From sequence record OP617745.1: a stretch of DNA of 64,000 bases, one strand, 5' to 3'. Positions 5,909 through 20,581 of the stretch are shown here, one piece after another. A program made the position numbers and the translations under genes. How positions within the stretch are numbered: the stretch's first letter is position 1; each line of letters opens with the position of its first letter. Below the pieces are notes generated by a model. That model ran no database searches. It worked only from the letters and a program-made list of their open reading frames with translations, and was not told the origin of the DNA.

Positions 5909-6517
5909 ATGAAAAAAGTCAAAAAATTATACAAAGATTGGTACAACAAAATTAAACAACAACATTTAACAGAAAAACGCAACCCGCAATCTACTTATGT
6001 GTTTAGATGGACTTTCAAATCCTCTGATAGTATGAAAAAGATTAAACCGGGTGCTACATTTAAAATTGCTAAAGTACTAAAAATATTTCTCAGAGCTAAT
6101 AATATCCATCTCAATGAAGTAGGGTGGAATAATAGAGGGAAAATTACTTGTACTAATAAAATTAAATCAGCTACCTTTGATGTATATATTAAAGATATTC
6201 CGTGCTCAATTTTTGTATCCGAAAAAACAAAAGGAATTCTAATAATCATTGATTATCATAAACATAAAAAAATTTATACATTAGAAAAAAATCTCATTGC
6301 ATATAATTCATATTACGATATCTTTCTTCAGGGTCGTCAAATACTTGAAGAATTAAACATTGATTATAATAACTTAACAGAAGAAGAAATGTTTCAACTA
6401 AGTACTATATTCGATGTGTATTTCTATAAAACCGTCAAAAATATAGGAATAGAATTACACAATACCAAAAACCTAAACTGTAATAAACTCGTAGCAGTAC
6501 TAAACAAATACAAATAA
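5909..6517 (+). CDS. hypothetical protein, FQxS-motif family
   Basis: TEEEMFQLSTI; SD GAGGT. Confidence 0.8.
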   Translation: MKKVKKLYKDWYNKIKQQHLTEKRNPQSTYVFRWTFKSSDSMKKIKPGATFKIAKVLKIFLRANNIHLNEVGWNNRGKITCTNKIKSATFDVYIKDIPCSIFVSEKTKGILIIIDYHKHKKIYTLEKNLIAYNSYYDIFLQGRQILEELNIDYNNLTEEEMFQLSTIFDVYFYKTVKNIGIELHNTKNLNCNKLVAVLNKYK

Positions 6518-6522
6518 AACCA

Positions 6523-6861
6523 ATGAAGGATTTAAGTAAAATGATCATCCAAATCAATAGCTATAAAACAAAAGAAGAACTGACCACCCTTATTATTAAA
6601 GCTATTCAAAAAGGGGAAAGTTATATCAAAATTCCATTAGATAAAACAAACAATCGTAATATGGTTATTTCTCAAATTGATAAAGATTTTAATATCAATC
6701 TATGTTATATGGAAGAAACCAGTACTGATATCATTTACTCAGGTACTGAATCATTTAAACCATACCAAATCATTACAGCAGTGTATAATTGCGTCCAACG
6801 TTATTTCAGTACTGAACCAAATAAAACAATAAGAGAACAACAAAAAATATACAAGAAGTAG
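6523..6861 (+). CDS. hypothetical protein
   Basis: ORF track. Confidence 0.7.
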   Translation: MKDLSKMIIQINSYKTKEELTTLIIKAIQKGESYIKIPLDKTNNRNMVISQIDKDFNINLCYMEETSTDIIYSGTESFKPYQIITAVYNCVQRYFSTEPNKTIREQQKIYKK

Positions 6862-6890
6862 AAAAACATAGCAAAAACTTCCCCGGTGGT

Positions 6891-7085
6891 ATGACCGTCA
6901 AAGAATTAAAAGAATTAATTAAAGATTGGCCTGAAACCAATCAGTACGGAGAAGATACTTTAGTCTATATCAGTACTGAATCAGATACGGATTGTACTGT
7001 ACATTCTTCGTGGTGTTCATCAGTAAGAACTAATGATAATGGTACACTTGTGTATGACTTGACTCTTGATACAGAACAAAGATAA
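6891..7085 (+). CDS. hypothetical protein
   Basis: ORF track. Confidence 0.65.
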   Translation: MTVKELKELIKDWPETNQYGEDTLVYISTESDTDCTVHSSWCSSVRTNDNGTLVYDLTLDTEQR

Positions 7086-7087
7086 TT

Positions 7088-7135
7088 AAAAAGACTCCCC
7101 GTAAAACTCGATCAAACGGATTCTACGGGGAGTAT
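7088..7135. terminator. hairpin closing the left gene block (U-tract on the minus strand)
   Basis: ACTCCCCGTA...TACGGGGAGT stem preceded by AAAAG. Confidence 0.55.
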
Positions 7136-7240
7136 ACTATATTGGACGATATGGTCATTATAGTAGACAATTTAATGGATATAGGTGATTGTATGTGAGT
7201 AAGAATAGTATAGTACTAATAATAATGAGTAGGAATTGAT

Positions 7241-7300
7241 AAGAATGATTCAGTACTATTAAGAATGATTAAGTACTATTCAGTACTATTCAGTACTGAT
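7241..7300. repeat. tandem 10-bp-register repeat rich in AGTACT
   Basis: aagaatgatt cagtactatt aagaatgatt aagtactatt cagtactatt cagtactgat. Confidence 0.8.
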
Positions 7301-7579
7301 ATGCCACTAAGTCCGTTTATAAAGTCGCACCCAGTGGGCTACATTTGTAACTATTCAGTACTGAATAATTCAATGCATATATTATTTCAGTACTTAATCA
7401 TTAGCAAACTATTAATTTCAATATCTCCTTTAGATAATATTTCGTATCTTATATTAACAAAAATCTGAATAGCATGTCAAGAAAAATCTGGATTACCAAC
7501 GAGAAAAAATCTGGATTTTAAAAATTTTGAAATGTCGTTTATAGTTCAGGAAAAAAATGAAATTATAACAAGAAAATTG

Positions 7580-7608
7580 TTGACATGGATATGCTGCCAT
7601 TATATAAT
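7580..7608 (+). promoter_or_regulatory. consensus sigma70 promoter with no downstream ORF
   Basis: TTGACA-17nt-TATAAT. Confidence 0.8.
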
Positions 7609-7614
7609 GTAATC

Positions 7615-8080
7615 CTCAAGACGAGAGAATGTTCTCTCACAGAAAATGCGAAGAAGCCGAGTTTATCTGTCCCTGCGTGAGTGGGCTAACATTTGAATAG
7701 GACAATACGTAGATGAATGAAAAAGGTTTAAAGGGAAGTATTTGATTCCCTGTAGTATAGTTAATGAGTTAGTACTGATTTAGATGTAATCATTGAGTAG
7801 TACTACTGTCGCAAAGGGAAACCTTTGGCTTCCATGGGGAGTGATGACAGAAGGGCATTATCCTCCATATAGAGTTACTGCGAATAACTCCGTAAGTTGG
7901 GTTGTGGCAAACCTCCTAAAATAGTGAATCTACAGTACTACTGCTTGATGGATTTGTTACCCGTAGGTAGTACTGCTTTTAATTTAAAGAATACCCTCCG
8001 CCAAGAAAGGTGCATGTAACTTGAACATGTGAACTACGGGAACAGTACTGAATAATTCAGTACTGATTCCTCTCCAAATT
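7615..8080 (+). ncRNA. candidate large structured non-coding RNA
   Basis: Follows a perfect promoter; no ORF over about 25 aa seen; multiple hairpins; GC-richer than flanks. Confidence 0.4.
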
Positions 8081-8114
8081 TTGGATACAATAATGCTAGG
8101 CTTCAGTTAGTACT

Positions 8115-8232
8115 GAGTGAGAATGATAATGATTCTCATTTGAATTGGATGAGAACGATTCTCATTTACAGTTGCAAATGATAATAGATTGCATTTACGA
8201 ATGGTTCTCATTCGCAGATGATAATGATTCTT
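8115..8232. promoter_or_regulatory. array of about 5 Fur-box-like sites
   Basis: GAGAATGATAATGATTCTC at 8119-8137 (16/19 to GATAATGATAATCATTATC), TGAGAACGATTCTCA at 8150-8164, and further AATGATAAT units. Confidence 0.7.
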
Positions 8233-8376
8233 GAATTTTTTCCATTAGCTAGACTACCCCGTAGGATATATAATATCCTGGAGTATCTGCTTAATTTTTC
8301 AAAATCTGGATTAATAATATCAGTACTATCCAGGATATGCAATACCCAAAACAAAAATAAATTCTAAAAAAATCTA

Positions 8377-8405
8377 TTGACATAATATTCCAGTACTGTC
8401 ATAAT
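8377..8405 (+). promoter_or_regulatory. sigma70 promoter, left arm of a 33-bp inverted repeat
   Basis: TTGACA-17-CATAAT. Confidence 0.8.
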
Positions 8406-8411
8406 ATAAGC

Positions 8412-8459
8412 AAGTCAGAAAAATGACGTTTGCCCACAGGGTGCGGAGGAACATCTATT
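8412..8459 (+). ncRNA. two-hairpin RNA motif copy
   Basis: GTCA-GAAAAA-TGAC then GCCC-ACA-GGGT GCGGAGGAACATCTATT. Confidence 0.55.
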
Positions 8460-8463
8460 AAAT

Positions 8464-8482
8464 GAGAATGATAATCATTTAC
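8464..8482. promoter_or_regulatory. Fur box at the centre of the convergent cassette
   Basis: GAGAATGATAATCATTTAC, 16/19 to consensus. Confidence 0.7.
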
Positions 8483-8489
8483 AATATTG

Positions 8490-8533
8490 AATAGATTTCC
8501 GCACCCTGTGGGTTAAGGAATTTCGCTTCCATG
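8490..8533 (-). ncRNA. two-hairpin RNA motif copy
   Basis: Reverse complement: GGAA-GCGAAA-TTCC, ACCC-ACA-GGGT GCGGAAATCTATT. Confidence 0.55.
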
Positions 8534-8539
8534 TAAAAC

Positions 8540-8567
8540 ATTATACAGTACTGGAATATTATGTCAA
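8540..8567 (-). promoter_or_regulatory. sigma70 promoter, right arm of the inverted repeat
   Basis: Reverse complement TTGACA-16-TATAAT. Confidence 0.8.
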
Positions 8568-8632
8568 TAGATTTTTTATCTGAACAAATTATTTTTTTGT
8601 TATATAATTACATATAAAAAAGGATTAAATTT

Positions 8633-9160
8633 ATGGTATGGAAAACACTTAAAGAAAATGATTTATATGAAATAGATGAATATGGAAATATTAGAAATAA
8701 ATCAACTATGCTAATAAGGAAAACTTCATTAAATGAGAATGGATATAAACAAATTATATTATCGTACAAAGGGAAAATATCTACTTATAAAATACATAGA
8801 TTAGTAGCAAATAATTTCCTTGCTCCACCAACAAAAGAGCAATTAGAATGGGCTAAAACTACAAAATATAAAGTTGTTCAAGTAAATCATAAGGATGGAA
8901 ACAAATTAAACAATCATAAAGACAATTTAGAATGGAATACTAATAGTGAAAACATGATTCATTCTTTTAAAAATCTTAATAGATTTAGACCAGGAAAAGG
9001 AAGTTCAAATATTAATAGTAAGCTTACAAAAGAAAATGAAAAATTTATATTGACTAATTATAAAAAGCGTGATAAGAAATATGGATTAGAAGCATTGGCG
9101 AGACAATTTAATGTTAGTGCAACAACTATTGCAAGATGCATTAATAATAATAAAAAATAA
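8633..9160 (+). CDS. NUMOD4/HNH homing endonuclease
   Basis: WKTLKENDLYEIDEYGNIRN (NUMOD4); HRLVANNFL...VNHKDGNKLNNHKDNLEW (HNH). Confidence 0.9.
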   Translation: MVWKTLKENDLYEIDEYGNIRNKSTMLIRKTSLNENGYKQIILSYKGKISTYKIHRLVANNFLAPPTKEQLEWAKTTKYKVVQVNHKDGNKLNNHKDNLEWNTNSENMIHSFKNLNRFRPGKGSSNINSKLTKENEKFILTNYKKRDKKYGLEALARQFNVSATTIARCINNNKK

Positions 9161-9163
9161 TAT

Positions 9164-9192
9164 TTGACAAGATTATTCAGTACTGCTATTAT
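9164..9192 (+). promoter_or_regulatory. early sigma70 promoter, representative of more than 25 similar promoters in 9-27 kb
   Basis: TTGACA-agattattcAGTACTGc-TATTAT. Confidence 0.85.
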
Positions 9193-9213
9193 ATATTCAT
9201 ACCAAACAGCAAA

Positions 9214-9233
9214 GGGAATCAGTACTGATTCCC
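9214..9233. repeat. 20-bp palindrome GGGAATCAGTACTGATTCCC used as a leader hairpin (copies at 10124, 10539, 16649, 18974; variants at 9727, 14597, 20238)
   Basis: Direct sequence comparison; lies between promoter and AAGGAG SD in all copies except 9727. Confidence 0.9.
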
Positions 9234-9250
9234 TGTAAAGGAGAACTACC

Positions 9251-9421
9251 ATGAAATACGCATACTCTTATTTTATTGTAAACGGTGAACGTTTGACCAT
9301 CGGCCAGGCTGCTGTAAAACATGAAATCATTTGCGATGAGCTGGCGAAGATGCTACCAGGTGAAACGCAAGAGTTTTACAAAGGCTTTCAGAAAGTCACT
9401 GTAACACGCTGCGAAGATTGA
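9251..9421 (+). CDS. small early protein (56 aa)
   Basis: Manual ORF with its own promoter and AAGGAG SD. Confidence 0.75.
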   Translation: MKYAYSYFIVNGERLTIGQAAVKHEIICDELAKMLPGETQEFYKGFQKVTVTRCED

Positions 9422-9486
9422 TCCAGTACTGGGGCAGCAATGCCCCTTTAAACGTCCTGTAACGCATTGTAAGAGGTTTTTATAAT

Positions 9487-9714
9487 ATGGCTATAGAAGT
9501 TAACGCTGGGGATATAAAGGCGGCTGTACTGCGTACCCTGAAAGCATACGGCAGAAAGCTGAATGATCGCAACGTTCCCTATTATTTCCTTGCTGCTACT
9601 CATAAAATGGCAATCGCTGAGGCTCGCGGCTGGCTGAATGATCGCAGTACTGTAAAGAGTACCAGAACAAGAAACGCAATTGAGCGATGGATAAAAGAAT
9701 TAAATCATTTCTAA
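9487..9714 (+). CDS. hypothetical early protein
   Basis: ORF track. Confidence 0.75.
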   Translation: MAIEVNAGDIKAAVLRTLKAYGRKLNDRNVPYYFLAATHKMAIAEARGWLNDRSTVKSTRTRNAIERWIKELNHF

Positions 9715-9787
9715 TAGTTCAGTTAAGGGATTCAGTACTGATTCCCTGTTCAGTACTGAAATTATAAGGGGAGTTAATTAATTCCCC

Positions 9788-9802
9788 TTTACAAATCTTT
9801 AC
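9788..9802. promoter_or_regulatory. CpxR-like box (TTTAC-N5-TTTAC)
   Basis: Reverse complement GTAAAGATTTGTAAA, 10 nt upstream of the -35 at 9813. Confidence 0.55.
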
Positions 9803-9812
9803 AAAAGAATGG

Positions 9813-9895
9813 TTGACATAGTATTTCAGTACTGGTATTATGTATTCATAGACAGAACAAGTCTTTGACCCACCGGGTGCGGAGGAGTATCTATT
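9813..9895 (+). ncRNA. promoter plus two-hairpin RNA motif copy
   Basis: TTGACA-17-TATTAT; AGAC-AGAACAA-GTCT; ACCC-ACC-GGGT GCGGAGGAGTATCTATT. Confidence 0.55.
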
Positions 9896-9904
9896 AGATT
9901 GAAT

Positions 9905-9923
9905 GAGAATGATAATGATTCTC
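9905..9923. promoter_or_regulatory. Fur box
   Basis: GAGAATGATAATGATTCTC, identical to 8119-8137. Confidence 0.7.
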
Positions 9924-10161
9924 ATTTACTGTACTGAATATATTCCAGCACCCTTTTTGGGCTTTTCGATTTCTCTCTACTTGTTAATAAGTATACCATA
10001 ATCAGTACTGAATGCAATGCTCTTTACAAATCTTTACAAAAGAAAATAATTATAAAAAGTACTGAAAAAGTATTTGACGTAATAATGTAGTACTGGCATA
10101 ATACATCCATACCAAACAACAAAGGGAATCAGTACTGATTCCCTGTTAAGGAGTAACTAAA

Positions 10162-10449
10162 ATGTTTAATGCTAATGATCATATTGTTAAAGAGTTTTCT
10201 TTCAGTAAGCCGGTGCATTTAGAAAACGGTGAAACGCTGGACAATAAATTTTATGGTAGTATTATTAAGCGTTATACATCGCGTAGCAGTACTGGAATTT
10301 TGTGGGAAGTGAATAAACAGTACAATGGTAATTCGCTGGTTGTCAATGAGTGGGAAAGTTATGCAGTAGCTGAAATGGATTTTTCTAACTTCATTACTGA
10401 ATCTTTGAACGATGATATTTTTTACAAGTTCACAGCGGAAAGGGTTTAA
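10162..10449 (+). CDS. hypothetical early protein
   Basis: Own promoter, leader palindrome, SD. Confidence 0.8.
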   Translation: MFNANDHIVKEFSFSKPVHLENGETLDNKFYGSIIKRYTSRSSTGILWEVNKQYNGNSLVVNEWESYAVAEMDFSNFITESLNDDIFYKFTAERV

Positions 10450-10576
10450 AAAGTTTTAAAGAGTATTTGACAACATAAACCAGTACTGTATAATGTATTG
10501 CATAGGGCGGCACAAGTCGCCCACAACTAACCAGCAAAGGGAATCAGTACTGATTCCCTGTTAAGGAGTAATTACT

Positions 10577-11188
10577 ATGAATGTTATCGATACTATCTAT
10601 TCTAAATCTTTTGATGAATTGGATTCAGTACAGAAGAAAAAAGCAATTGATATTATGCGGGATCTGGAACGCCACGATTCAGATCCATTCTGGGCACAAT
10701 TAATTAATGAAGATAAACGCGAATTAATGAATAATGAATATGGTTTTACTGATACTGTAATTCATTATAGCGGCTTTTGCTCACAAGGTGACGGGGCGTC
10801 AATTAGTACTGAATCAATCGCCGCCGAGACGTTTTTACGCAAAATTAAAGCATGGTCGAAATTCCGTGTATTGCATAAACATTTCAATGATGGTACAATT
10901 ACATTAAAGATCGAACGCAACGATCATCGTTATTCTCATGAAAATACTGTTTCTGGTGTGGTGGATCTGGACTACGGCACTGAATTCACTGCTAAACAGG
11001 AAGAGAAAGCGGACGAACTGGAAACGCTTTTGACTGAAACTATCCGCGATCTTTCTCGCCAGCATTATCAGGTTCTGAGCGATGAAAACGATTATCAAAA
11101 TAGTGATGAAGCATTGATTGAATCGATTAATGCAAATGATTATAATTTCAAAGTTAATAGTACTGGCGACGTGTTAGGACTTGCATAA
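10577..11188 (+). CDS. conserved phage protein of unknown function (SGFxSQGDGA motif)
   Basis: HYSGFCSQGDGAS and C-terminal SDEALIESINANDYNF, recalled as a recurrent phage family. Confidence 0.75.
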   Translation: MNVIDTIYSKSFDELDSVQKKKAIDIMRDLERHDSDPFWAQLINEDKRELMNNEYGFTDTVIHYSGFCSQGDGASISTESIAAETFLRKIKAWSKFRVLHKHFNDGTITLKIERNDHRYSHENTVSGVVDLDYGTEFTAKQEEKADELETLLTETIRDLSRQHYQVLSDENDYQNSDEALIESINANDYNFKVNSTGDVLGLA

Positions 11189-11278
11189 TGACCAAATTAT
11201 ATATTCGTTTCTGTTTTGCCTGGTACTTGTATAATCTGCAAAATGGTTATACAGTGAAATAATGAACTGATATACTGT

Positions 11279-11373
11279 AAAACGTCCTGTAAACGATTAT
11301 GGGACGTTTTAAGGAATATTGGTACAATGGTTAGTACTGAATGATTTAAACGCCTTACAATCGCTTACAGGGG
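11279..11373. repeat. bipartite AAAACGTCCTGTAA... element (near-identical 40 nt at 19499; relatives at 9449, 13064, 14341, 15449, 23762, 27200)
   Basis: aaaacgtcctgtaa(a/t)cgattatgggacgttttaaggaata, 39/40 identical. Confidence 0.75.
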
Positions 11374-11382
11374 ATTATATCA

Positions 11383-11613
11383 ATGACTATTATCGCAAAA
11401 TCCAAAATCAACAATACTACAGTAAAACTTGTACAATTGAAAAACTGTTTTAAAGTTTCCTATTGTGGTTTTAAGCGTGAATTTAGTACTATCGAAAAGG
11501 CGGCAGAACATTACAGCAGTACTGTAAAATCTTTTGTTGATAATGATTCTCGTAACCTTGTTAGTGATTATAATCGTTTTAATTCAATTCAGGAACAATT
11601 AAAAGATCTGTAA
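11383..11613 (+). CDS. hypothetical early protein
   Basis: ORF track. Confidence 0.75.
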   Translation: MTIIAKSKINNTTVKLVQLKNCFKVSYCGFKREFSTIEKAAEHYSSTVKSFVDNDSRNLVSDYNRFNSIQEQLKDL

Positions 11614-11678
11614 AAAGTACTTGCTTTAATCTTTCAGTACTGTTATAATAACTACATCAACCACAAAGGAGTAACCAA

Positions 11679-11993
11679 ATGAGTACTAAAGAACTGAATG
11701 TAACTACCAACACTTATAAGACGTTAGGCGGTCGGTTGTTACGTGATTATTACGCGATTGAGATCGAAGAACGCGAATTACCCGAAGATAAACACTATTG
11801 GGAAAGTGGTGTGAGTCCTCTGTTACGGGTAACAACGTCAAAGCATGTTTTCTTTACTTCCCGCATTCATGTTAATAAGCGTGTTGAATTGACTTTCTCT
11901 TTCAGTGGTAGTTATAAAGATCATGAGATCTTGAATGATCGTATCGTTATTAATAAATTTATTCAAATGTATGGTGTAGATTCTTTCGCATAA
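11679..11993 (+). CDS. hypothetical early protein
   Basis: Own promoter, AAGGAG SD. Confidence 0.8.
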   Translation: MSTKELNVTTNTYKTLGGRLLRDYYAIEIEERELPEDKHYWESGVSPLLRVTTSKHVFFTSRIHVNKRVELTFSFSGSYKDHEILNDRIVINKFIQMYGVDSFA

Positions 11994-12056
11994 GTATTTG
12001 ACAATGCGATCCAGTACTGTATAATGTATTTCATCGAATAGATAGGAGTACTTACC

Positions 12057-12362
12057 ATGCTAACTTGGAATAAATCCAGTGTTTTAAAAGTGCAAAAAGT
12101 ACTGAATAATGATTATGGTGATATTTTAATCAGTACTGTAAACTTAACTGATACATTTATTAAAAATGTAAAAGCTGGGAATGATCTCCGGCAAGAATAT
12201 TTGAACGCAGTTCAAACTATTCTACATATTCCAGAACAATTGGTTTATTTTGTTCGTACTCTTTCACAATCAAAAATTATGATCCGTTTTAAAGAAGTAC
12301 CAGAATTCAGATCATTAGTTGCTTTTTATGAAATTTTGGTAAAACAAGCAAGATGTTTATAA
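12057..12362 (+). CDS. hypothetical early protein
   Basis: Own promoter, AGGAG SD. Confidence 0.8.
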   Translation: MLTWNKSSVLKVQKVLNNDYGDILISTVNLTDTFIKNVKAGNDLRQEYLNAVQTILHIPEQLVYFVRTLSQSKIMIRFKEVPEFRSLVAFYEILVKQARCL

Positions 12363-12451
12363 AAAGTATTTGACAATGCGATCCAGTACTGTATAATGTA
12401 TTACATCAAAGGGGATACATAGTGTATCCCTGATATAAAGGAGTAGCGACT

Positions 12452-12811
12452 ATGCGAGCTTTTAACGTTTATAAGAATGACAAGAAAATTGACGTTGTTT
12501 ATTATTCCGAAGTAATGACCGCGAAAGAAGTAACCGATTTACTGAATAGCCGTGGTGAATACAACGGTGAAGTAAAAGCATTTCGGTCATTGAATAGTGC
12601 GAATATTCGCACAGTACTGAAAAATGCTAAAACTGTTTTATTCAATGATGACGAATATTTTAATAAAGATGTTACGGGTATTAAAAACCTGGAAGATCTG
12701 AAAAGCCTTATTGGTATTAAAGGCAATGTTTATAAAGTTACTGAAGTCGGATCACGCCATGAATATAAATTAGCCAATAGTGATTATAAATTTTCAATCA
12801 TTGTAATGTAA
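12452..12811 (+). CDS. hypothetical early protein
   Basis: Own promoter, leader hairpin, SD. Confidence 0.8.
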   Translation: MRAFNVYKNDKKIDVVYYSEVMTAKEVTDLLNSRGEYNGEVKAFRSLNSANIRTVLKNAKTVLFNDDEYFNKDVTGIKNLEDLKSLIGIKGNVYKVTEVGSRHEYKLANSDYKFSIIVM

Positions 12812-12907
12812 TATGAAAGTTTATAGCGTCGATGCTTACGATATTCAGGGCGATCTTTCAGTACTGAAAAATATGTTGACATAGTTTTTTGTTACTGTAT
12901 AATAATT

Positions 12908-12932
12908 AGGGGATCAATCGATCCCCTTTTTT
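12908..12932 (+). terminator. intrinsic terminator directly after a promoter (12876-12903)
   Basis: AGGGGATC-AATC-GATCCCCT-TTTTT. Confidence 0.7.
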
Positions 12933-12951
12933 GTTTCAGTACTGAATTAAT

Positions 12952-13036
12952 AATAGATACACTACGGCACCCTATGGGTTAGTGCCTTGTGTCCGGCTTA
13001 TGTAGTTATTATGCCAGTACTGCGAACATAAGTCAA
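12952..13036 (-). ncRNA. promoter plus two-hairpin RNA motif copy
   Basis: Reverse complement TTGACT-17-CATAAT; GCC-GGACACAA-GGC; ACCC-ATA-GGGT GCCGTAGTGTATCTATT. Confidence 0.55.
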
Positions 13037-13046
13037 TAGATGATTT

Positions 13047-13061
13047 GTAAAGAAGTGTAAA
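13047..13061. promoter_or_regulatory. CpxR-like box
   Basis: GTAAA-GAAGT-GTAAA, 10 nt upstream of the minus-strand -35. Confidence 0.55.
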
Positions 13062-13494
13062 TGCACAGGAAGCGTTTTAAGGCGTTAATCTGTTGCTGGT
13101 GGCTGATAGTACAGAGAAGTGTTTTAGATTGATTGTAGGCTGTTGTAGGCGTTTATAGATAGTAAAGTACTGATAATGTTTAATGATCCAAGTATGTGCA
13201 AATTATTTTAATTTTTTTCGTATTGGGTATTGACGGATTATGTCAGTACTGGCATAATGTATCACATGAAGCGGCGAGATGGAAAGTCATCTCAGTAGCT
13301 GGCCAGTAAAGCATATGAAGTCCTGGTGTCGCCTCAAACGGTCTTAGGTATTAAATAGCACGTAACATCTAAACGTTGATGATACTGAAAACTAAAAAGA
13401 AAAAAGTAGTTGACAAGTACTAACGAGAATGAGATAATCTCACTCGTTGAAACAAACAAACAATCTTAATCAAAACTTAATGAGGATTTACAAA

Positions 13495-13995
13495 ATGGCT
13501 AAACTTAACTCTGTGATCGTTGCTCTGCTGGCTGGTGATTTCGCTGCTCTGAATACTTCTTTCGCGTCGGTATCGATGGAAGATATGAAAACTGTCCGCA
13601 ATAACTTTAACGACTTTTATTCCAAATTTAAAGCGGCAAATGAAGCGGCGGAAGCGGCTGCAAAAGAGCGTAAAGCACAGATCGAAACCGAAACTAAAGC
13701 CCTGGTAGATGCCCTGGTAACTGCTGGCCTGGATCTGGAAATGGCCGCCGAAGTCGCCAGCCAGAAAATGGCGGTGAAATATCCCGAGCTGGTCGCGAAG
13801 TCGGGAACTGGTAAAACCTGGTCGTTTGAAACGGTATTCGTTAACGTTGACGGTGAAAAACTGGAAATTGGCACCAAAGGCAACAAAGGCAGTATGAAAG
13901 CACTGGCTGCGGCACGCGAAGCAATTGCCGCCGGGCAGTACAAAGATCGTGCTGAATGGATCGCCGCTCACACCTGGACTGAAACCGAAGCGTAA
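13495..13995 (+). CDS. highly expressed early protein, tentatively H-NS-like
   Basis: SD GAGGA before ATG 13495; host-optimal codons; coiled coil then ALVDALVTAGLDLE, similar to the H-NS oligomerisation region. Confidence 0.5.
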   Translation: MAKLNSVIVALLAGDFAALNTSFASVSMEDMKTVRNNFNDFYSKFKAANEAAEAAAKERKAQIETETKALVDALVTAGLDLEMAAEVASQKMAVKYPELVAKSGTGKTWSFETVFVNVDGEKLEIGTKGNKGSMKALAAAREAIAAGQYKDRAEWIAAHTWTETEA

Positions 13996-14016
13996 TAATT
14001 CAGTACTGTAATAATT

Positions 14017-14044
14017 AGCCTCCTGTAATTAGGAGGCTTTTTAT
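14017..14044 (+). terminator. intrinsic terminator
   Basis: AGCCTCCT-GTAATT-AGGAGGCT-TTTT. Confidence 0.85.
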
Positions 14045-14135
14045 TTTGTTCAAAAAAATATTTTAATTTATTTTTTGAACGGACTTAAAAAATCGGATAT
14101 AATAATAAAGGGTGTTAATTACAGAGACCCCCATA

Positions 14136-14231
14136 GTGTTCGCTACGCTCACATAATGATCTTACTCGTTGCACTCGTAAGATCATTATCCAATCGGCCT
14201 TCGGCGATTTCTTTTTGATTTCCTACGGAAA
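14136..14231 (-). other. cluster of DNA hairpins with GNA triloops
   Basis: 13-bp stem ATAATGATCTTAC/GTAAGATCATTAT plus TTTCC-GTA-GGAAA and CC-GAA-GG on the minus strand. Confidence 0.6.
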
Positions 14232-14635
14232 CCAAACGAAACCACCAGCAAAGGCAGATCCCATTATTTGATTTAGTTAGTACTGCGATTAATTAGTAAT
14301 TCATTGCACTACATAGCAATCAATTCCTTTTGTAATAGCTCACAGGACGCAATAAGACGCGTTTAAATGACTTCCCTATGTAATGCCATTCCTTTTTAAT
14401 AAGTCCTCTTAAAACGCGTTACAGTGCGTTATACGGCGTTTAATAATACTCATCATTTCTTTTTCAAAAAGTACTTGCATTAATGATCCAGTACTGTAAT
14501 AATGTACTCACTGAAACGCAGTAAGTAAATGCAAATAAGTATTTGACAAAGTGTTGTAGTACTGGCATAATGAATACATCAAAACGAAATAGCAAAGGGA
14601 TTCAGTACTGAATCCCTGTTAAGGAGAAACACCAA

Positions 14636-15109
14636 ATGTTAAAACTTCATAAAGTACTGGATAACGCAGTTGTAACCGACTTTTTCCTGTCTCTTAACAA
14701 CGAACCGAAAACAGCGAAGGAAATTGTTTTGAGTGGTTACGTTGCCAGCAAGTCAGAGATCGCACATTTGGAAAGTGCTTTCAAGTGTGGGGATGTATTG
14801 TACAGAAAAATGCAAAATACCATTGAAGATTTGCAATATATCAATTTACGTGATATTGTAGACAACAAATTAGATATTTCGGAAGAAGCACGCGAAAACC
14901 TGGTAAGTAAATTATGTTACCGTTGCCGAACTGCAAAATGGAATCGCATTCGTAGTATTATTACTTACGATTTAAGTAATATCGATTCTAAATCAATTCT
15001 TGAACGTATGTTATTAAATTTACAAAGCAATGAATGGTTTTATACTGCTGCTCAATCTCATAGCGAAGAAATTGCATATATTCGTGATTATGTAATTTAC
15101 AGCAAGTAA
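14636..15109 (+). CDS. hypothetical early protein
   Basis: Own promoter, leader palindrome, SD. Confidence 0.8.
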   Translation: MLKLHKVLDNAVVTDFFLSLNNEPKTAKEIVLSGYVASKSEIAHLESAFKCGDVLYRKMQNTIEDLQYINLRDIVDNKLDISEEARENLVSKLCYRCRTAKWNRIRSIITYDLSNIDSKSILERMLLNLQSNEWFYTAAQSHSEEIAYIRDYVIYSK

Positions 15110-15182
15110 TTAATAATTGATTAGCCATCAATAAAGCTGGTGGCTAACAGAATATTAATAACCTGTTAGGAGAATAATCTAA

Positions 15183-15452
15183 ATGAAAGGTATTAGTACT
15201 ATAATTGATGCAAATACCCGCGTAGCTCGTTCAATGGTTGCTACGTCATTACGTGAATATACTGCAAGCGGGTATTTAGTATTCGCCGTAAATGGCAAAT
15301 TGCAAGAACGTAGAATAGCATTCAGTACTAAAGAAAATTGCCGTTATATTGTATTCAAGAAAGAAGCATACAAGATAGATTTACCAGCGAAACCGATCTC
15401 CGGTGGTTACAATGTTGAAAGTCTATATGAAAGGCCGCCATATACTGCATAG
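15183..15452 (+). CDS. hypothetical early protein
   Basis: SD AGGAG. Confidence 0.75.
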   Translation: MKGISTIIDANTRVARSMVATSLREYTASGYLVFAVNGKLQERRIAFSTKENCRYIVFKKEAYKIDLPAKPISGGYNVESLYERPPYTA

Positions 15453-15561
15453 AATCGATTTTGAGCGGCTTTAATGAAATATAGGGTATCAGTACTGATA
15501 CCCGTTTAAAACAGTGTAGAAAGGCGTATAACGCGTTATACGCCGTAAGGGAGTGGATTCT

Positions 15562-15732
15562 ATGAAGCGTGAACAAGCTTTATTGACGCCTGAAGAGGCA
15601 AGACGCTATGAAATGTTTTCAAACCAGGAAACGATCAAAGCGGCACAATATAATCCGGTTGCTTGTACAGTACAAAGAAAGAATTTTGTACTAAATGAAG
15701 TAGAAAGTATTATCAAATCAAATAAGGAGTAA
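15562..15732 (+). CDS. small early protein (56 aa)
   Basis: Manual ORF, SD GGGAG. Confidence 0.6.
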   Translation: MKREQALLTPEEARRYEMFSNQETIKAAQYNPVACTVQRKNFVLNEVESIIKSNKE

Positions 15733-15738
15733 AACGCT

Positions 15739-16011
15739 ATGCAAAATAACCGCCCAATGATCCGCAACATGCTTTTCGTATTCCAGAAAAAAGTTAATGT
15801 AACTTCGGTAAATGGTGAACGTAAATTAAATGCAGCATTCGCCAAATATACCCAAAGCAAAAACATCCATTACTTTTATCTTACTCTGAATGAGTTTAAT
15901 GATCTGGTAAAAGAAATGTTTGTCAGTACTGAAATTGTTGCACCTGTAAGCACTGATATCATTCTAAAAGAATGGGAAAGTTTTTACAAAAGTTCTGTTG
16001 TAATCGCTTGA
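15739..16011 (+). CDS. hypothetical early protein
   Basis: SD AAGGAG. Confidence 0.75.
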   Translation: MQNNRPMIRNMLFVFQKKVNVTSVNGERKLNAAFAKYTQSKNIHYFYLTLNEFNDLVKEMFVSTEIVAPVSTDIILKEWESFYKSSVVIA

Positions 16012-16091
16012 TAACATAATCCAGTACTGTATAATGTATTACATCAAAGGGAATGAATGATTCATTCCCGCATAACTAGGAGTAATTGACT

Positions 16092-16445
16092 ATGTTTGAT
16101 AAAGTTTTATTTTCTGATAACACCTCTGAAACCGAGATCCCGGAAGCGGTAAAAGCTTTTGCTCAATTAGTTGCCCAGCGTCAAACTGATAATTACGACG
16201 GGCCTTATTCTTTCCTTACTGAGATTAGTAAAGGAAAAAAGTTTATTAAACTTATTCGCCGCGAGAAGTGGAAAGATAACGGACAATTAACAGGCGGATC
16301 TGTATTTGCCTTTATTGATCCCGATGGTAACATTTACAAATCAGCGTCAGCTAAAGCACCAGCTAAAGGCATTCGCGGAAATGTTAACATCAATGGCGGC
16401 AATGATGCAATCAGACGTGATGGTTATATTCGTTACTTTCGTTAA
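16092..16445 (+). CDS. conserved phage protein of unknown function
   Basis: GKKFIKL...SVFAFIDPDGNIYKSASAKAPAKGIRGNV, recalled as a widespread phage family. Confidence 0.75.
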   Translation: MFDKVLFSDNTSETEIPEAVKAFAQLVAQRQTDNYDGPYSFLTEISKGKKFIKLIRREKWKDNGQLTGGSVFAFIDPDGNIYKSASAKAPAKGIRGNVNINGGNDAIRRDGYIRYFR

Positions 16446-16471
16446 TTGACAAATCTTTACAAATCCAGGGG

Positions 16472-16556
16472 TTGACTTCGGTCGCCCCTTTTGTTATTAT
16501 ATATTCATACCACAGAGCAAGTGGTTTAAGCCCACAGGGTGCCGAGATGTATCTAT
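16472..16556 (+). ncRNA. terminator-embedded promoter plus two-hairpin RNA motif copy
   Basis: TTGACT-17-TATTAT; ACCAC-AGAGCAA-GTGGT; GCCC-ACA-GGGT GCCGAGATGTATCTAT. Confidence 0.55.
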
Positions 16557-16687
16557 AATTTAATAATTTGAAGTACTGAAAAATAATTATAAAAGTAATT
16601 GCTTTGATTATCCAGTACTGCTATTATATATTCATACCTTAAAGCAAAGGGAATCAGTACTGATTCCCTGTATAGGAGATTATCCAA

Positions 16688-16888
16688 ATGATTAATGAAA
16701 ATACACAATTACAAAGCAAATTAAATATAAGTATCGGTAACGGGTTAGGCTCGCATAAATATGTGAAAGATCGCTCTTACACTTTACGTTTTCTTATTAA
16801 GTGTGGATTGACTAACCAACAAATATATAATTATTTCATAGTTAAAGGATTAACTAATAATGAAAGGAAAAAAATTAACGACAAGTGA
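16688..16888 (+). CDS. hypothetical early protein
   Basis: Own promoter, leader palindrome, SD. Confidence 0.65.
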   Translation: MINENTQLQSKLNISIGNGLGSHKYVKDRSYTLRFLIKCGLTNQQIYNYFIVKGLTNNERKKINDK

Positions 16889-17858
16889 ATTTATTAAACG
16901 TGCAATAGAAAAACATGGAAATTTATATGATTACCGTAATTGTAATTATATAAATGCAAAAACAAAAATATGTATTATACATCCCAAATATGGAGAACAT
17001 TGGCTATATCCGCATTGTCATTTAAAAGGGTCAGGGCATCCAATAGTAGGGCGTAAATCGTCAATTAAAAATCAATCATCAACAACTTCAGAGTTTATTA
17101 AAAAAGCCAATAAAATACATAATAATTTTTATGATTATAGTAAAACGGATTATATTAATTCTCACACAAAAGTTATTGTTATCGATCCTGTATATGGTGA
17201 ATATACTGTTTATCCTAATGATCATCTAAAATCATCTAACAAAGGAGGGCATCCACAAAGAGCAAAAGATAAAGCAATTAAACAACTATCTGCTAGAAAA
17301 ACTGATCAAGATGTTATTATAAAAAGATTTAAAGATGTCCACGGAAATTTATATGATTATTCAAAGGTTAATTATATAAATTATAGTACAAAAGTACTTA
17401 TTATTCATCCAATATATGGTGAACATTGGATAACTCCCATAAATCATATAAACAATAAACAAGGTCATCCACTAGCTAAAAATAAAAATAGAACAAGTTA
17501 TAATCCAAATAAACCTGGATATTTTTATATTAATGAAATAATATATAATAATAAAATTTATTATAAGTTTGGTATTACATCAAACTATAATGTAAGATTA
17601 AAAAGGCATCAATCTAAAAATAAATTATGTAGTACTGAAAAGTATAAATTATATTATTGTAATGATGGAATGTTTATTAAATGTATGGAATCGTATATTA
17701 AACAATATTCTAATATTAAAACAAAAGCATTGGATAAAGATATTTACAAAGAGGGATATACGGAAACTATTAATGAAAGTGAACTATTACGAATTATTTC
17801 TATCATAAATTCTTTTATAGATCTTCATTTGTGTGGTGTATATATAACAGAGATATAA
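16860..17858 (+). CDS. putative homing endonuclease: three DUF723-like repeats plus a GIY-YIG/T5orf172-like C-terminal domain
   Basis: 3x YDYSK..YIN..TK..I.HP.YGEH...HL...GHP; YFYINEI...YYKFGITSNYNVRLKRH; AT-richer than neighbours. Confidence 0.75.
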   Translation: MKGKKLTTSEFIKRAIEKHGNLYDYRNCNYINAKTKICIIHPKYGEHWLYPHCHLKGSGHPIVGRKSSIKNQSSTTSEFIKKANKIHNNFYDYSKTDYINSHTKVIVIDPVYGEYTVYPNDHLKSSNKGGHPQRAKDKAIKQLSARKTDQDVIIKRFKDVHGNLYDYSKVNYINYSTKVLIIHPIYGEHWITPINHINNKQGHPLAKNKNRTSYNPNKPGYFYINEIIYNNKIYYKFGITSNYNVRLKRHQSKNKLCSTEKYKLYYCNDGMFIKCMESYIKQYSNIKTKALDKDIYKEGYTETINESELLRIISIINSFIDLHLCGVYITEI

Positions 17859-17975
17859 AAAAATGATTAAAAAAGTATTGACTGCGATACTCAAGTACTG
17901 TATCATAACTGGTGTAGCGTTCGTGTTAGCAGTTGCTATAGTGTTTAGTACTGTAATTGTATTGGGGAACATATC

Positions 17976-18281
17976 ATGATTAAAAATATTGAATCATTTG
18001 ATAAAGCATATCTTTATACCAGTACCTTTCGGAATAGCGAAGGCGATCCGGTTGAATTTAAAAATGTAGTACTGATCCGACCTGGTTTTGATATTATTCA
18101 TATCTGTAATTCATGGAATCAGGCGGCGGGCAATCGCTATACTATTGATAAAGAAATTTCAATAGAAGAAGCGTTAAAACTTCCATCATTGCCGGATCGT
18201 TTATCCCTGGCTAGTCGTGTGGAACTGGTAGGCGATACAGCACAATATATTACACATGAGTATGAATTTAAGTACTTATAA
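17976..18281 (+). CDS. hypothetical early protein
   Basis: ORF track. Confidence 0.7.
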   Translation: MIKNIESFDKAYLYTSTFRNSEGDPVEFKNVVLIRPGFDIIHICNSWNQAAGNRYTIDKEISIEEALKLPSLPDRLSLASRVELVGDTAQYITHEYEFKYL

Positions 18282-18364
18282 GTGTTGACAACACGATTCA
18301 GTACTGTATAATGTTTATCAAAGGGGATACATAGTGTATCCCCAATTAACAGGAGTAATAACTA

Positions 18365-18595
18365 ATGACTACAATGTACTTAACCGAAGTAAAAACAGTC
18401 AAAGATACTACCACAAATAAAATTACTTATTTGCAGCGGATCTGCGGAGTATGGCAACGTATTAGTAAATCAAAATACTACAAATTAACATCATACGCCA
18501 ATCGGTCCGATTCTTTCAGTACTGTTACAAAAGGTAACAAAGTACATCAATTTGCAACATATTATTACTATAGCCTGGCATCTATTCCAGTATAA
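18365..18595 (+). CDS. hypothetical early protein
   Basis: Own promoter, leader hairpin, SD. Confidence 0.8.
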   Translation: MTTMYLTEVKTVKDTTTNKITYLQRICGVWQRISKSKYYKLTSYANRSDSFSTVTKGNKVHQFATYYYYSLASIPV

Positions 18596-18599
18596 TCCC

Positions 18600-18705
18600 T
18601 TTACAAATCTTTACAAAACCAGTACTTGATTTAATTATTGAGTACTGGTATTATATATTCATTGGCAGATAAGCCGTGACCCACAGGGTGCCGAGATGTA
18701 TCTAT
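18600..18705 (+). ncRNA. CpxR-like box plus promoter plus two-hairpin RNA motif copy
   Basis: TTTAC-N5-TTTAC at 18600-18614; TTGATT-17-TATTAT; GGC-AGATAA-GCC; ACCC-ACA-GGGT GCCGAGATGTATCTAT. Confidence 0.55.
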
Positions 18706-18799
18706 AGTTTATTGAATTGAAGTACAGAAAAATATTTCTTGTGTAATTCATTTCTTATGATATAATAGTAATCACATAAATTAATTGGAGTGAACAAAA

Positions 18800-18913
18800 A
18801 TGTTATTAGATTGGCTCAATACTTTATCCCCCGCTTCTGGCCGTCGCTGGGCTATCGGTTCGTCGGTTGCCATCGTTGTAGGCGTCATTGTACTTTTAGT
18901 GATGATTTTCTAA
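18800..18913 (+). CDS. small single-TM peptide (37 aa)
   Basis: Manual ORF, SD GGAG, hydrophobic C-terminus. Confidence 0.65.
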   Translation: MLLDWLNTLSPASGRRWAIGSSVAIVVGVIVLLVMIF

Positions 18914-19011
18914 AAAGTACTTGCTTTAATGATCCAGTACTGTATAATGTACTTATACCCAAATAACAGCAAAGGGAATCAGTACTGATTCCCTGTAAAG
19001 GAGTAAAACCA

Positions 19012-19843: not shown

Positions 19844-19948
19844 TTATTTCAAGTACTATCAATATGTTGTTGACTTATGTTGGTAGTACTTTATAATAAC
19901 TTATATAGCGAATGAAAATTATTCTCCCCATTATTAGGAGTAAAGAAT

Positions 19949-20527: not shown

Positions 20528-20529
20528 AG

Positions 20530-20560: not shown

Positions 20561-20581
20561 GTATTCAGTACTAATATATTT

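Follow-up and report, generated by a model that had tools for sequence, protein, structure and literature searches.

A convergent pair of predicted promoter and RNA-module units around a Fur-type box near the predicted genome end of the Klebsiella jumbo phage KP13-7

The gene-free terminal region of the RaK2-like Klebsiella jumbo phage KP13-7 contains a mirror-symmetric cassette (8367-8577), in which two facing predicted promoters of the sigma70 type are each followed by a copy of the same RNA module. This promoter-module unit belongs to a real, conserved family whose first hairpin is maintained by compensatory changes, and different phage genera share both the convergent layout and its location some 1 kb from the start of the genome. 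We tentatively read the cassette as two overlapping early small-RNA or leader genes with a predicted operator of the host-Fur type at +52..+71 of both transcripts, a reading that comes near to an even chance without reaching it. All coordinates refer to the window, i.e. the entire 64,000-nt stretch of record OP617745.1 that was analyzed, which matches KP13-7 at 100%.

Genomic setting and anatomy of the cassette

Position 7310 of the window corresponds to position 1 of the 20,030-bp terminal repeat of the phage Muenster, as defined by PhageTerm, and the left end of KP13-7 is placed from relatives only. The cassette lies about 1.1 kb (about 1103 nt) from this predicted end, within the region equivalent to the ~20-kb terminal repeat. 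Such repeats in the RaK2-like jumbo phages consist almost wholly of short genes without annotation and, by analogy with other phages with long terminal repeats, probably hold early, host-takeover genes. The cassette shares the 1.3-kb gene-free stretch adjoining the predicted end with a tandem cluster of palindromic boxes and with AT-rich sequence following each motif. The principal features of this region are:

7310-7338, minus strand: predicted left physical genome end (Muenster position 1)
8118-8233, no strand assigned: tandem cluster of five Fur-like palindromic boxes upstream of the cassette (8118-8141, 8150-8164, 8174-8192, 8199-8213 and 8215-8233), ~95% conserved in RaK2, K64-1 and Muenster
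8367-8399, plus strand: left inverted-repeat arm, with an A-tract, the -35 element TTGACA (8377-8382) and a spacer containing CAGTACTG (8391-8398)
8377-8405, plus strand: predicted rightward sigma70-type promoter, TTGACA-17-CATAAT with TGn before the -10 (11/12), predicted start near 8412
8412-8462, plus strand: left RNA module (covariance-model match 46.7 bits, E 1e-14; fold)
8457-8483, no strand assigned: central palindromic Fur-type box, with the 19-mer GAGAATGATAATCATTTAC at 8464-8482
8483-8533, minus strand: right RNA module (covariance-model match 71.6 bits, E 2e-24; fold)
8567-8540, minus strand: predicted leftward sigma70-type promoter, TTGACA-16-TATAAT (12/12), predicted start near 8533
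8545-8577, minus strand: right inverted-repeat arm (33 bp, perfect)
8633-9160, plus strand: ORF for a homing endonuclease with HNH_3 and NUMOD4 domains, immediately right of the cassette
9813-10017, both strands: second mirror cassette, comprising a promoter (9813-9841, plus) and module (9848-9898, plus), a central Fur-type box (9905-9929), a degenerate module (9930-9981, minus) and the promoter TTGCAT-16-TATACT (about 10017-9990, minus)

The outer arms form the perfect 33-bp inverted repeat of the original prediction (8367-8399 / 8545-8577; complementarity 100%, arms 145 nt apart), and there is an inner perfect repeat of 15 nt (8433-8447 / 8498-8512). The two convergent sigma70-type promoters claimed earlier are also borne out as near-consensus sites (11/12 and 12/12), predicted from consensus match alone. 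Promoter-like sites as a whole show no enrichment in this AT-rich region (17 found versus 16.5 expected); going by the sequence, the symmetric placement of sites scoring 11-12/12 is not what chance gives. The predicted starts lie about 121 nt apart, such that the predicted transcripts overlap. No terminator-like site (a G+C-rich hairpin followed by a U-run) is found within 8367-8577, and the cassette is indeed devoid of ORFs, with none of at least 30 aa inside 8384-8607. Two smaller reading frames, a 12-codon ORF (ATG 8423 to TAA 8459-8461) and an ATG-TAT-CTA-stop mini-ORF seen in some module copies, were ruled out as neither is kept across copies.

Leftward from the cassette to the predicted end there is no annotated gene, and the minus strand contains only mechanical ORFs of 30-48 aa; a leftward copy of the motif (7324-7338) stops 14 nt short of the predicted end. 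The HNH gene to the right is specific to KP13-7 and has its own promoter, and the segment comprising it and the cassette (8348-9238) stands in place of Muenster 1036-1786.

The RNA module family and its conservation

The RNA motif CCCACAGGGTGCGGA is present on both arms, as first described, and at up to three mismatches it occurs 11 times in the window against 0.09 expected. The repeated unit consists of a strong predicted promoter of the host (sigma70) type, a short 5'-terminal hairpin whose stem sequence is free and whose loop is purine-rich, the invariant element CCC-loop-GGGUGC(GGAG) with a loop of N3-5, and an (A/G)TCTAT-type element. About 12 copies occur in the terminal-repeat region and none elsewhere in the window, and the RaK2-like relatives likewise have the unit in this region alone. 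In the left module these parts are GTCA-gaaaaa-TGAC (8414-8427), CCC-ACA-GGGTGCGGAGG (8433-8449) and ATCTATT (8452-8458), and in the right module GGAA-gcgaaa-TTCC, CCC-ACA-GGGTGCGGAA and ATCTATT. A covariance model of the module recovered 82 matches across nine related phage regions, those in the window all falling within 8412-26217. In about 50 of 56 instances GGGTGC is preceded by a predicted promoter scoring at least 9/12, whose end lies 27-36 nt ahead of it. The string GCGGAGG was considered as a Shine-Dalgarno sequence, a CsrA site or an RfaH ops element and was ruled out by eye, many copies having GCCGAG, GCATAA or GCCAAA instead.

The earlier description of a two-hairpin motif stands for hairpin 1, which, as it had also noted, differs in sequence between the arms while keeping its stem (GTCA/TGAC versus GGAA/TTCC); the "second hairpin" amounts merely to CCC-ACA-GGG plus one R:U pair. 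On an alignment that had been fitted to the model, each of the four hairpin-1 pairs shows changes on both sides, with 93.5% of cells paired. The covariation score of 0.282 compares with 0.066 in shuffles (0 of 500 as high as observed) and at most 0.045 with slid partners. This position-specific count was adopted after a free best-hairpin search of the 27 nt preceding the motif did not separate real from shuffled sequence. Hairpin 1 is missing from about a third of the module copies and was not recovered by RNAalifold on the module alignment, and the single 51-nt module folds no better than shuffled sequence (z -0.1 to -1.2). Since the CCC/GGG stem of hairpin 2 never varies, it offers no covariation evidence. 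Its loop does vary from 3 to 5 nt, and it is closed by A:U in 47 sequences and by G:U in 29, a pattern easier to reconcile with a hairpin in RNA than with a duplex DNA site.

The module additionally occurs singly at the following locations:

12900-13036, minus strand: single module with promoter (13036-13008) and terminator-like hairpin (12927-12908), a predicted discrete RNA gene of ~100 nt
16472-16560, plus strand: single module upstream of a second, gene-proximal promoter
18662-18709, 22653-22703, 24609-24653 and 26167-26217, plus strand: further single modules, each upstream of a second, gene-proximal promoter
20528-20663, minus strand: single module, 12/12 promoter at 20663-20635, terminator at 20554-20536 followed by a T-run; likewise a predicted discrete RNA gene of ~100 nt

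The two minus-strand singles possess both a predicted promoter and a predicted terminator of their own. The plus-strand singles and the cassette arms have no terminator, and a discrete RNA product is therefore assumed for these.

Terminator-like sites are dense in the region (31 found versus 9 expected). This, together with the promoter-proximal location of a structured RNA and the purine-rich hairpin-1 loops (GAAAAA, GCGAAA and AGAACAA) reminiscent of those of boxB, raises the possibility that the module is a cis-acting processive antitermination signal of the HK022 put or lambda nut type, which would allow polymerase started at these promoters to pass the many early-region terminators. However, minus-strand copies occur directly before the terminators bounding the ~100-nt RNAs, where antisense read-through would be harmful, the leftward arm of the cassette faces no gene, and neither a boxA-like sequence nor a match to an Rfam family was found, all of which render this proposal very unlikely. 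A scan of 6000-11000 against Rfam at E up to 1 returned only noise (a sole rne5 match of 20 bits at 10018-10152, against a threshold of 180 bits). The motif and its complement had no match in 5,426 E. coli genomes, indicating that there is no obvious host mimic or antisense target. In IMG/VR, a scan by exact 15-mers gave 78 loci, mostly chance single matches, with whole modules confined to jumbo contigs: besides CBB, BF, RaK2 and GAP32, these were only contigs of 359,777 and 366,160 bp. The literature searched on RaK2-group promoters, CAGTACTG, Fur boxes of virulent phages and transcriptomes of these genera does not mention the module.

Across the nine genomes there are 16 convergent cassettes. 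Five phages of distinct lineages have the first of these at 977-1250 nt from the start of the record, as does Munch, which is near-identical to Kae01 and hence falls outside the count of five. The cassette of the Pectobacterium phage CBB is 74.6% identical to that of KP13-7, and has compensatory changes in both hairpin-1 types (GTCA/TGAC to GCCA/TGGC and GGAA/TTCC to GGAG/CTCC). The left and right types are thus each kept in CBB, which upholds the earlier view that the arms do not result from a recent inversion copy.

That the cassette keeps to about 1.0-1.25 kb from the genome start in different genera, and that terminal sequences are conserved between independently deposited genomes, might alternatively be taken to point to an injection-pause signal comparable to the T5 injection stop signal, or a packaging or end-processing signal of the terminal repeat. 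Against such a role, which we consider extremely improbable, various phages have additional cassettes 2.4, 3.8, 7.3 and 20.8 kb away from the end.

A very improbable alternative is that function resides in the long hairpin of the read-through RNA or in the DNA palindrome itself, either as a cruciform or as a site for RNase III processing or insulation like those of the T7 early region. The RNA spanning 8412-8545 has a predicted fold of -49.6 kcal/mol (z -6.8), with a perfect 17-bp stem and a further 7-bp stem, and the minus strand one of -45.3 kcal/mol (z -6.8). Yet, the hairpin-2 loops of the two arms differ in sequence or length in 10 of the 16 cassettes and the perfect outer complementarity falls to 3-5 bp, while each arm still keeps its own CCC-loop-GGGUGC. 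Moreover, single, unpaired copies are equally conserved, and the stem is not followed by a U-tract. Since each arm evolves independently of the other, selection appears to maintain neither a long hairpin between the arms nor a cruciform.

A further alternative at the DNA level is a transcription-primed (R-loop) bidirectional origin, comparable to T4 oriF/oriG or ColE1, wherein each G-rich transcript (GGGUGCGGAGG) would stay hybridized and prime the leading strand outward, and the boxes would serve as an iteron-like initiator or architectural site. The gene-free location by the predicted end, with its tandem boxes and AT-rich sequence after the motifs, would suit an origin, and the convergent geometry would supply primers on both strands. 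The presence in CBB and GAP32 of a different repeat array and further large inverted repeats at this place is likewise reminiscent of initiator-iteron pairs. The lengths of the cassette centers (45, 56 and 67 nt) progress in steps of 11, i.e. one helical turn, but four cassettes depart from this rule. Against an origin, the promoter-plus-module unit recurs ~12 times over 19 kb, often directly upstream of genes or before a terminator. The GC-skew profile shows no switch at the cassette, which is weak evidence because all genes are on one strand. On balance an origin appears clearly unlikely.

Fur-type boxes and their candidate binding proteins

The central Fur box of the original prediction, GAGAATGATAATCATTTAC, was recovered with a score of 16/19 exactly at the cassette center. 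Windows reaching at least 16/19 to the Enterobacterales consensus used for comparison, GATAATGATAATCATTATC, number four in 64 kb versus 0.15 expected from Markov simulations, and all four fall at 8119-9929, within 2.6 kb of the predicted end. On sequence grounds, the central box is a very good, non-random match to the Fur consensus. It does not lie over a -35 or -10 element: its center (8473) is ~60 nt downstream of both predicted starts, and the box spans roughly +53..+71 in the plus transcript and +52..+70 in the minus transcript.

Boxes of 15-17/19 are present at cassette centers in KP13-7, Muenster, Kae01, Munch, Hallingskeid and BF, and thus in examined phages of Klebsiella, Salmonella, Erwinia (Hallingskeid) and Serratia. 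The original prediction favored an iron-gated device. As the core function this is not supported by the comparison, as 7 of the 16 cassettes (three in CBB, two in GAP32, the second of BF and that of vB_Ec-M-J) share the convergent architecture of the boxed ones but lack a Fur-type box, and the box covers neither promoter. Hence, iron gating is at most an add-on; judged by this distribution the box is an accessory of the cassette, and iron gating in KP13-7 itself is plausible.

The boxes might instead be bound by a phage-encoded protein or another host protein with a Fur-like site, in which case that protein would act through an operator to shut off the two early promoters of the cassette. Consistent with this, the boxes systematically show GAGAAT/ATTCTC in place of GATAAT/ATTATC of the Fur consensus, and relatives infecting Pectobacterium, Cronobacter and E. 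coli, hosts with the same Fur consensus, lack boxes and have other repeats. In CBB and GAP32, the place of the KP13-7 box cluster is taken by a GATGGATAGAC-like array, which could mean a phage-specific binding protein rather than Fur. Conversely, the central 13 nt, AATGATAATCATT, equal the Fur consensus exactly. The closest match in E. coli, GATAATGATAATCATTTAC, lies over a TATAAT in an intergenic region of ColV plasmids, and the 17/19 box of the Munch cassette is identical to that ColV-plasmid box. Tandem boxes of the same type also occur in the unrelated rV5-like phage phAPEC8, pointing to a shared host factor. We consider a binder other than Fur unlikely. A tblastn search with E. coli Fur against 50,697 phage records had no RaK2-like phage among its matches, suggesting that any Fur acting in this clade is that of the host.

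Possible mode of action and comparison with known systems

Under the favored reading of two overlapping small-RNA or leader genes, both promoters would fire upon phage entry by means of the host RNA polymerase, giving rise to two overlapping and mutually complementary transcripts whose functional part would be the first ~50 nt. The module would be a protein-binding RNA acting in trans, as suggested by its occurrence as free-standing ~100-nt RNA genes with terminators. In KP13-7, host Fur-Fe(II) on the central box, 52-71 nt downstream of both starts, might obstruct both polymerases, so that iron-replete cells would contain mainly short module RNAs. On Fur-free DNA, transcription would read through into the opposite arm and then the flanks, and the resulting RNA might form the predicted hairpin of -50 kcal/mol or a sense/antisense duplex.

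A more elaborate version, which strikes us as clearly doubtful, is that host Fur serves the phage as a sensor, as a target or in both ways. Its DNA would act as a Fur sponge that derepresses host iron uptake, and the box in the overlap of the two convergent RNA genes would tie the output of a new class of protein-binding phage RNA to iron status. At least seven high-quality Fur-type boxes lie in the first 2.6 kb (the five in tandem at 8118-8233 and one at the center of each mirror cassette), a number that the terminal repeat would double and replication would multiply. The ability of multicopy boxes to titrate Fur is well established in the laboratory (the Fur titration assay), making the sponge mechanism physically plausible.

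Strong facing promoters 60-250 bp apart with overlapping, complementary transcripts are typified by Pant/Psar of P22, pR/pL of coliphage 186 and prgQ/prgX of pCF10. Transcriptional interference and antisense pairing are expected in these systems, as they are for the cassette. In the known systems, each promoter serves a gene program such that the pair forms a switch. The cassette of KP13-7 resembles the P22 type in its two facing predicted promoters and overlapping predicted transcripts. Unlike it, the arms need no gene and there is no alternative gene set for each promoter. It further differs from facing-promoter switches in the presence on each arm of one and the same conserved 5' RNA module, which is also found singly, and in that the repressor-type box is located in the transcript overlap rather than at a promoter.

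The box itself is comparable to Fur operators of Enterobacterales in being palindromic, in its 16/19 score with identity over the central 13 nt and in the tandem or overlapping boxes nearby. Its placement within both predicted transcripts rather than over -35/-10 departs from the usual geometry of Fur repression. It also differs in occurring in the gene-free terminal region of a virulent phage, with no iron-related gene downstream.

In the early region of T7, the tandem host promoters A1-A3 near the left end all point inward, and the early transcripts contain RNase III hairpins. KP13-7 is similar in having strong host-type promoters within about 1 kb of a genome end (in T7 the one entering first) and large, in this case predicted, RNA hairpins in early transcripts, but one of its promoters is directed toward the genome end and its hairpin between the arms lacks conservation. 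The module is also akin to HK022 put and lambda nut as a promoter-proximal RNA with hairpins that is repeated downstream of early promoters, from which it differs in showing no sequence resemblance or Rfam match and in the terminators directly following some copies.

RaK2-like jumbo phages are under study for possible therapeutic use against Klebsiella, E. coli, Salmonella and plant pathogens, and to our knowledge hardly any early function is known in this group. The analysis defines a repeated, conserved RNA module outside Rfam and a conserved convergent arrangement at a fixed distance from the genome end, in which several lineages place a host Fur-type operator, as they do in an adjacent tandem array. 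Should Fur bind these boxes, they would directly link host iron status to the first minutes of infection by a virulent phage, and if the module RNA binds a host or phage protein it would offer a handle on host takeover.

A possible positional counterpart is found in the distantly related jumbo phage PA5oct, whose terminal repeat contains highly transcribed, uncharacterized ncRNAs of 236-451 nt (PMC7318152). Like these loci, the cassette of KP13-7 is gene-free and located in the terminal repeat of a member of the same broad phage group, the likeness drawn here being one of position.

Architecture and genomic location of the cassette

Klebsiella phage KP13-7 (OP617745; genus Alcyoneusvirus, RaK2-like, 357.7 kb) carries a mirror-symmetric cassette at 8367-8577 (window position being record position minus 124,000), and its description in the original prediction is accurate. 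The arms of a perfect 33-nt inverted repeat (8367-8399 / 8545-8577), the two convergent, near-consensus sigma70-type promoters, one per arm, and a central Fur-type box, GAGAATGATAATCATTTAC (8464-8482; 16/19 against the Fur consensus), are all present, and no ORF of at least 30 aa occurs in 8384-8607. Downstream of each promoter comes a short first hairpin, which differs in sequence between the arms while retaining its stem (left GTCA/TGAC, right GGAA/TTCC), and then the 15-mer CCCACAGGGTGCGGA, whose two copies (8433-8447 / 8498-8512) are again a perfect inverted repeat. The promoters are:

8377-8405, plus strand: rightward predicted promoter, TTGACA-17-CATAAT, sigma70-type consensus match
8567-8540, minus strand: leftward predicted promoter, TTGACA-16-TATAAT, sigma70-type consensus match

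The best-supported interpretation is that the cassette would be a convergent pair of early small-RNA or leader genes of a new family, with the Fur-type operator in the transcript overlap as an accessory. An origin, which the original prediction had offered as an alternative in R-loop form, is a rival to this gene pair.

KP13-7 was deposited as circular and its genome ends are derived from relatives only. Positions 1-1035 of phage Muenster align with 7310-8347 at 92% identity, and for Muenster PhageTerm predicts a terminal repeat of 20,030 bp whose left end is the start of the record. As the independently deposited records of Muenster, the Pectobacterium phage CBB and BF open with related sequences (AGTCCGTTTATAAAGTCGCA, TATCCGTTCCTGAAGTCGAA and TATCTTCTCCTGAAGTCGCA, respectively), a real and conserved terminus is supported. 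The alignment and the related starts together place the cassette ~1.1 kb away from the predicted left end, within a 1.3-kb gene-free stretch that opens the terminal-repeat equivalent (roughly 7310-27,400). Similarly, in CBB, BF, Kae01, Munch and Muenster, 977-1250 nt separate the start of the record from the first cassette. An injection or packaging signal is a further rival to the paired genes. The nearest published report concerns the distant relative PA5oct, with two highly transcribed non-coding RNAs in its terminal repeat (PMC7318152). In CBB, RpoD-like promoters were reported mainly in the neighboring short-early-gene block, with three in the terminal repeat, and nothing resembling the RNA module is described (PMC5259590). 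In the searchable literature neither the module nor the cassette is described, and neither are Fur boxes of virulent jumbo phages.

Around the predicted left end (7310) there is an AGTACT-containing repeat run just before it (7200-7309), and a leftward motif copy (7324-7338) finishing 14 nt from it. A perfect 12/12 predicted promoter (7580-7608), 270 nt from this end, precedes ~300 nt of conserved gene-free sequence, 92% identical to Muenster, which may be another non-coding RNA; the region 7580-7900 had no match in Rfam.

The cassette belongs to a KP13-7-specific segment (8348-9238), in place of which Muenster has 1036-1786, and which also includes:

8633-9160: HNH_3/NUMOD4 homing-endonuclease ORF

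Muenster's own cassettes lie at ~1210-1400 and 2330-2530, the first, at the same position as that of KP13-7, matching it at only 73%. Compared over its whole length, the KP13-7 cassette most resembles that of CBB (74.6% identity over 77% of the query), and its left half also shows an 81-84% match to the second cassettes of K64-1 and Hallingskeid. This pattern of similarity suggests exchange between lineages.

The repeated module and its convergent arrangement

With up to 3 mismatches allowed, the window contains 11 occurrences of the 15-mer, where 0.09 would be expected. A covariance model built from nine seed copies (4-bp hairpin 1, spacer, CCC-loop-GGG and 21 further positions) recovered 82 matches across nine phage regions (KP13-7, Muenster, CBB, GAP32, Kae01, Munch, Hallingskeid, BF and vB_Ec-M-J), those in the window being confined to 8412-26217; in IMG/VR complete modules occur in jumbo-size contigs only. 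In ~50 of 56 module instances GGGTGC is preceded, at a distance of 27-36 nt, by the end of a promoter scoring 9/12 or better, so that the module begins within a few nt of the predicted transcript start. Antitermination is another rival to a small-RNA or leader product.

In the model alignment, which was itself fitted to the covariance model, both-sided changes occur at 4/4 pairs of hairpin 1, the outer pair being GC 23, AU 10, UA 8 and CG 2 times and the remaining pairs similar, with 93.5% of alignment cells paired. The covariation score is 0.282, as against 0.066 in shuffles (0/500 reach the observed value) and at most 0.045 with the partners slid. In the orthologous CBB cassette (74.6% identical) the left stem changes from GTCA/TGAC to GCCA/TGGC and the right from GGAA/TTCC to GGAG/CTCC. 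RNAalifold on the model alignment recovered hairpin 2 and not hairpin 1; in about one-third of the copies the leader is shorter and hairpin 1 is missing, and single 51-nt modules show no unusual folding stability (z -0.1 to -1.2). The invariance of the CCC/GGG stem means that covariation cannot test hairpin 2. Nevertheless, its variable loop length (3-5 nt) and the A or G that precedes CCC and faces an invariant U (A:U 47, G:U 29) are more in keeping with an RNA hairpin than with a site in duplex DNA.

Convergent cassettes number 16 in the nine genomes. A read-through transcript in KP13-7 is predicted to form a very stable hairpin, with -49.6 kcal/mol (z -6.8) for the plus strand and comparable values for the minus strand. 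Pairing of the arms as an RNase III hairpin or cruciform is, however, the rival most directly weakened: in 10/16 cassettes the hairpin-2 loops differ between the arms, some in length too, and perfect outer complementarity is down to 3-5 bp, with CCC-loop-GGGUGC kept in each arm, which argues for selection on each arm separately. Thus, the convergent arrangement is conserved and inter-arm pairing is not. The perfect repeats of KP13-7 result from both arms having the consensus version, and the identity of the outer 33 bp probably also reflects local homogenization; the two promoters of the CBB cassette are unlike each other. Center lengths of 45, 56 and 67 nt, i.e. steps of 11 nt or one helical turn, account for 12/16 cassettes, the remaining four (motif-to-motif segment 88 nt) being off this pattern, which may be due to chance given the few independent lineages.

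The module also occurs singly. Plus-strand copies are without a terminator and are followed, 50-72 nt downstream, by the -35 of another promoter closer to the gene. Minus-strand copies comprise:

13036-12900, minus strand: single module with its own predicted promoter and terminator-like hairpin; predicted RNA ~100 nt
20663-20528, minus strand: single module with its own predicted promoter and terminator-like hairpin with T-run (20554-20536); predicted RNA ~100 nt

These arrangements lead us to infer that the functional product is the initial ~50 nt of the RNA, which probably acts in trans.

Fur-type boxes

Four windows score at least 16/19 against the Fur consensus in the 64 kb, versus 0.15 expected, all confined to 8119-9929. 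The same area holds:

8118-8233: tandem cluster of five related Fur-like palindromes, ~95% conserved in RaK2, K64-1 and Muenster

Cassettes with a 45-nt center (three in CBB, two in GAP32, BF no. 2 and vB_Ec-M-J) have no box, and those with a 56-, 63- or 67-nt center (two in KP13-7, Muenster, Kae01, Munch, Hallingskeid and BF no. 1) have a 15-17/19 box. The iron gating originally proposed thus survives as a lineage-specific add-on rather than a core function. The Munch box, GATAATGATAATCATTTAC, has the same sequence as the closest E. coli match, which lies over TATAAT in a ColV-plasmid intergenic region adjoining a DAHP synthase gene, near cvi. No Fur homolog was detectable by tblastn in any RaK2-like phage. 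Binding of the boxes by host Fur appears reasonably probable. The cassette box lies ~52-71 nt into both predicted transcripts and, if bound, would act as a roadblock and not by promoter occlusion. In place of the GATAAT of the Fur consensus the boxes consistently show GAGAAT, and CBB and GAP32 have an array of GATGGATAGAC-like repeats at the place of the KP13-7 cluster; both keep a phage-specific binder in play. Immediately to the right of the cassette these two phages also show a ~22-bp inverted repeat, TTCCCCTTCTATATACGTATA, whose arms are ~95 bp apart (array and repeat together: CBB 650-800 and 1163-1305; GAP32 2700-2830). Outside this clade, the unrelated rV5-like coliphage phAPEC8 has three tandem Fur-like palindromes (AAATGAGAATGATTATCATTTAC, AAATGCGAATCATTATCATTTGC and CATGAGAACTCTTCTCATTC), of a type with those of KP13-7, at 1500-1610, in a ~490-bp gene-free region.

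Other repeats in the window

The palindrome CAGTACTG has 96 sites in 1-36000 against 0.4 expected (e.g. 8043, 8058, 8391, 8546, 9178), dense to ~27.3 kb and sparse beyond 36 kb. Its sites are in intergenic sequence, in the loops of 5'-UTR hairpins and in promoter spacers, where they provide the TG for an extended -10, and it has the appearance of an independent binding site or signal. A candidate RNase E 5' UTR element at 10018-10152 was dismissed as noise (Rfam 20 bits versus a threshold of 180, E 0.006). Further elements are:

9213-9234, 10123-10144, 10538-10559, 16648-16669, 18973-18994 and four variants: hairpin AGGGAATCAGTACTGATTCCCT
9787-9805, 10022-10040, 18599-18617, 16445-16463: tandem decamer CTTTACAAATCTTTACAAA
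16466-16500, 22611-22646, 24560-24601, 26127-26160: terminator-promoter composites

The hairpin (9 occurrences, 0 expected) lies in the 5' UTR of plus-strand early genes, directly upstream of the ribosome-binding site, and its minus-strand reading scores as a terminator. The decamer (4 occurrences, 0 expected) directly precedes early promoters and is also found in Muenster, CBB and GAP32. Each composite closes the upstream gene with a G+C hairpin and trailing T's; the hairpin loop doubles as the -35 (TTGAC) for the promoter that comes next, and the T-run leads into the -10 of that promoter.
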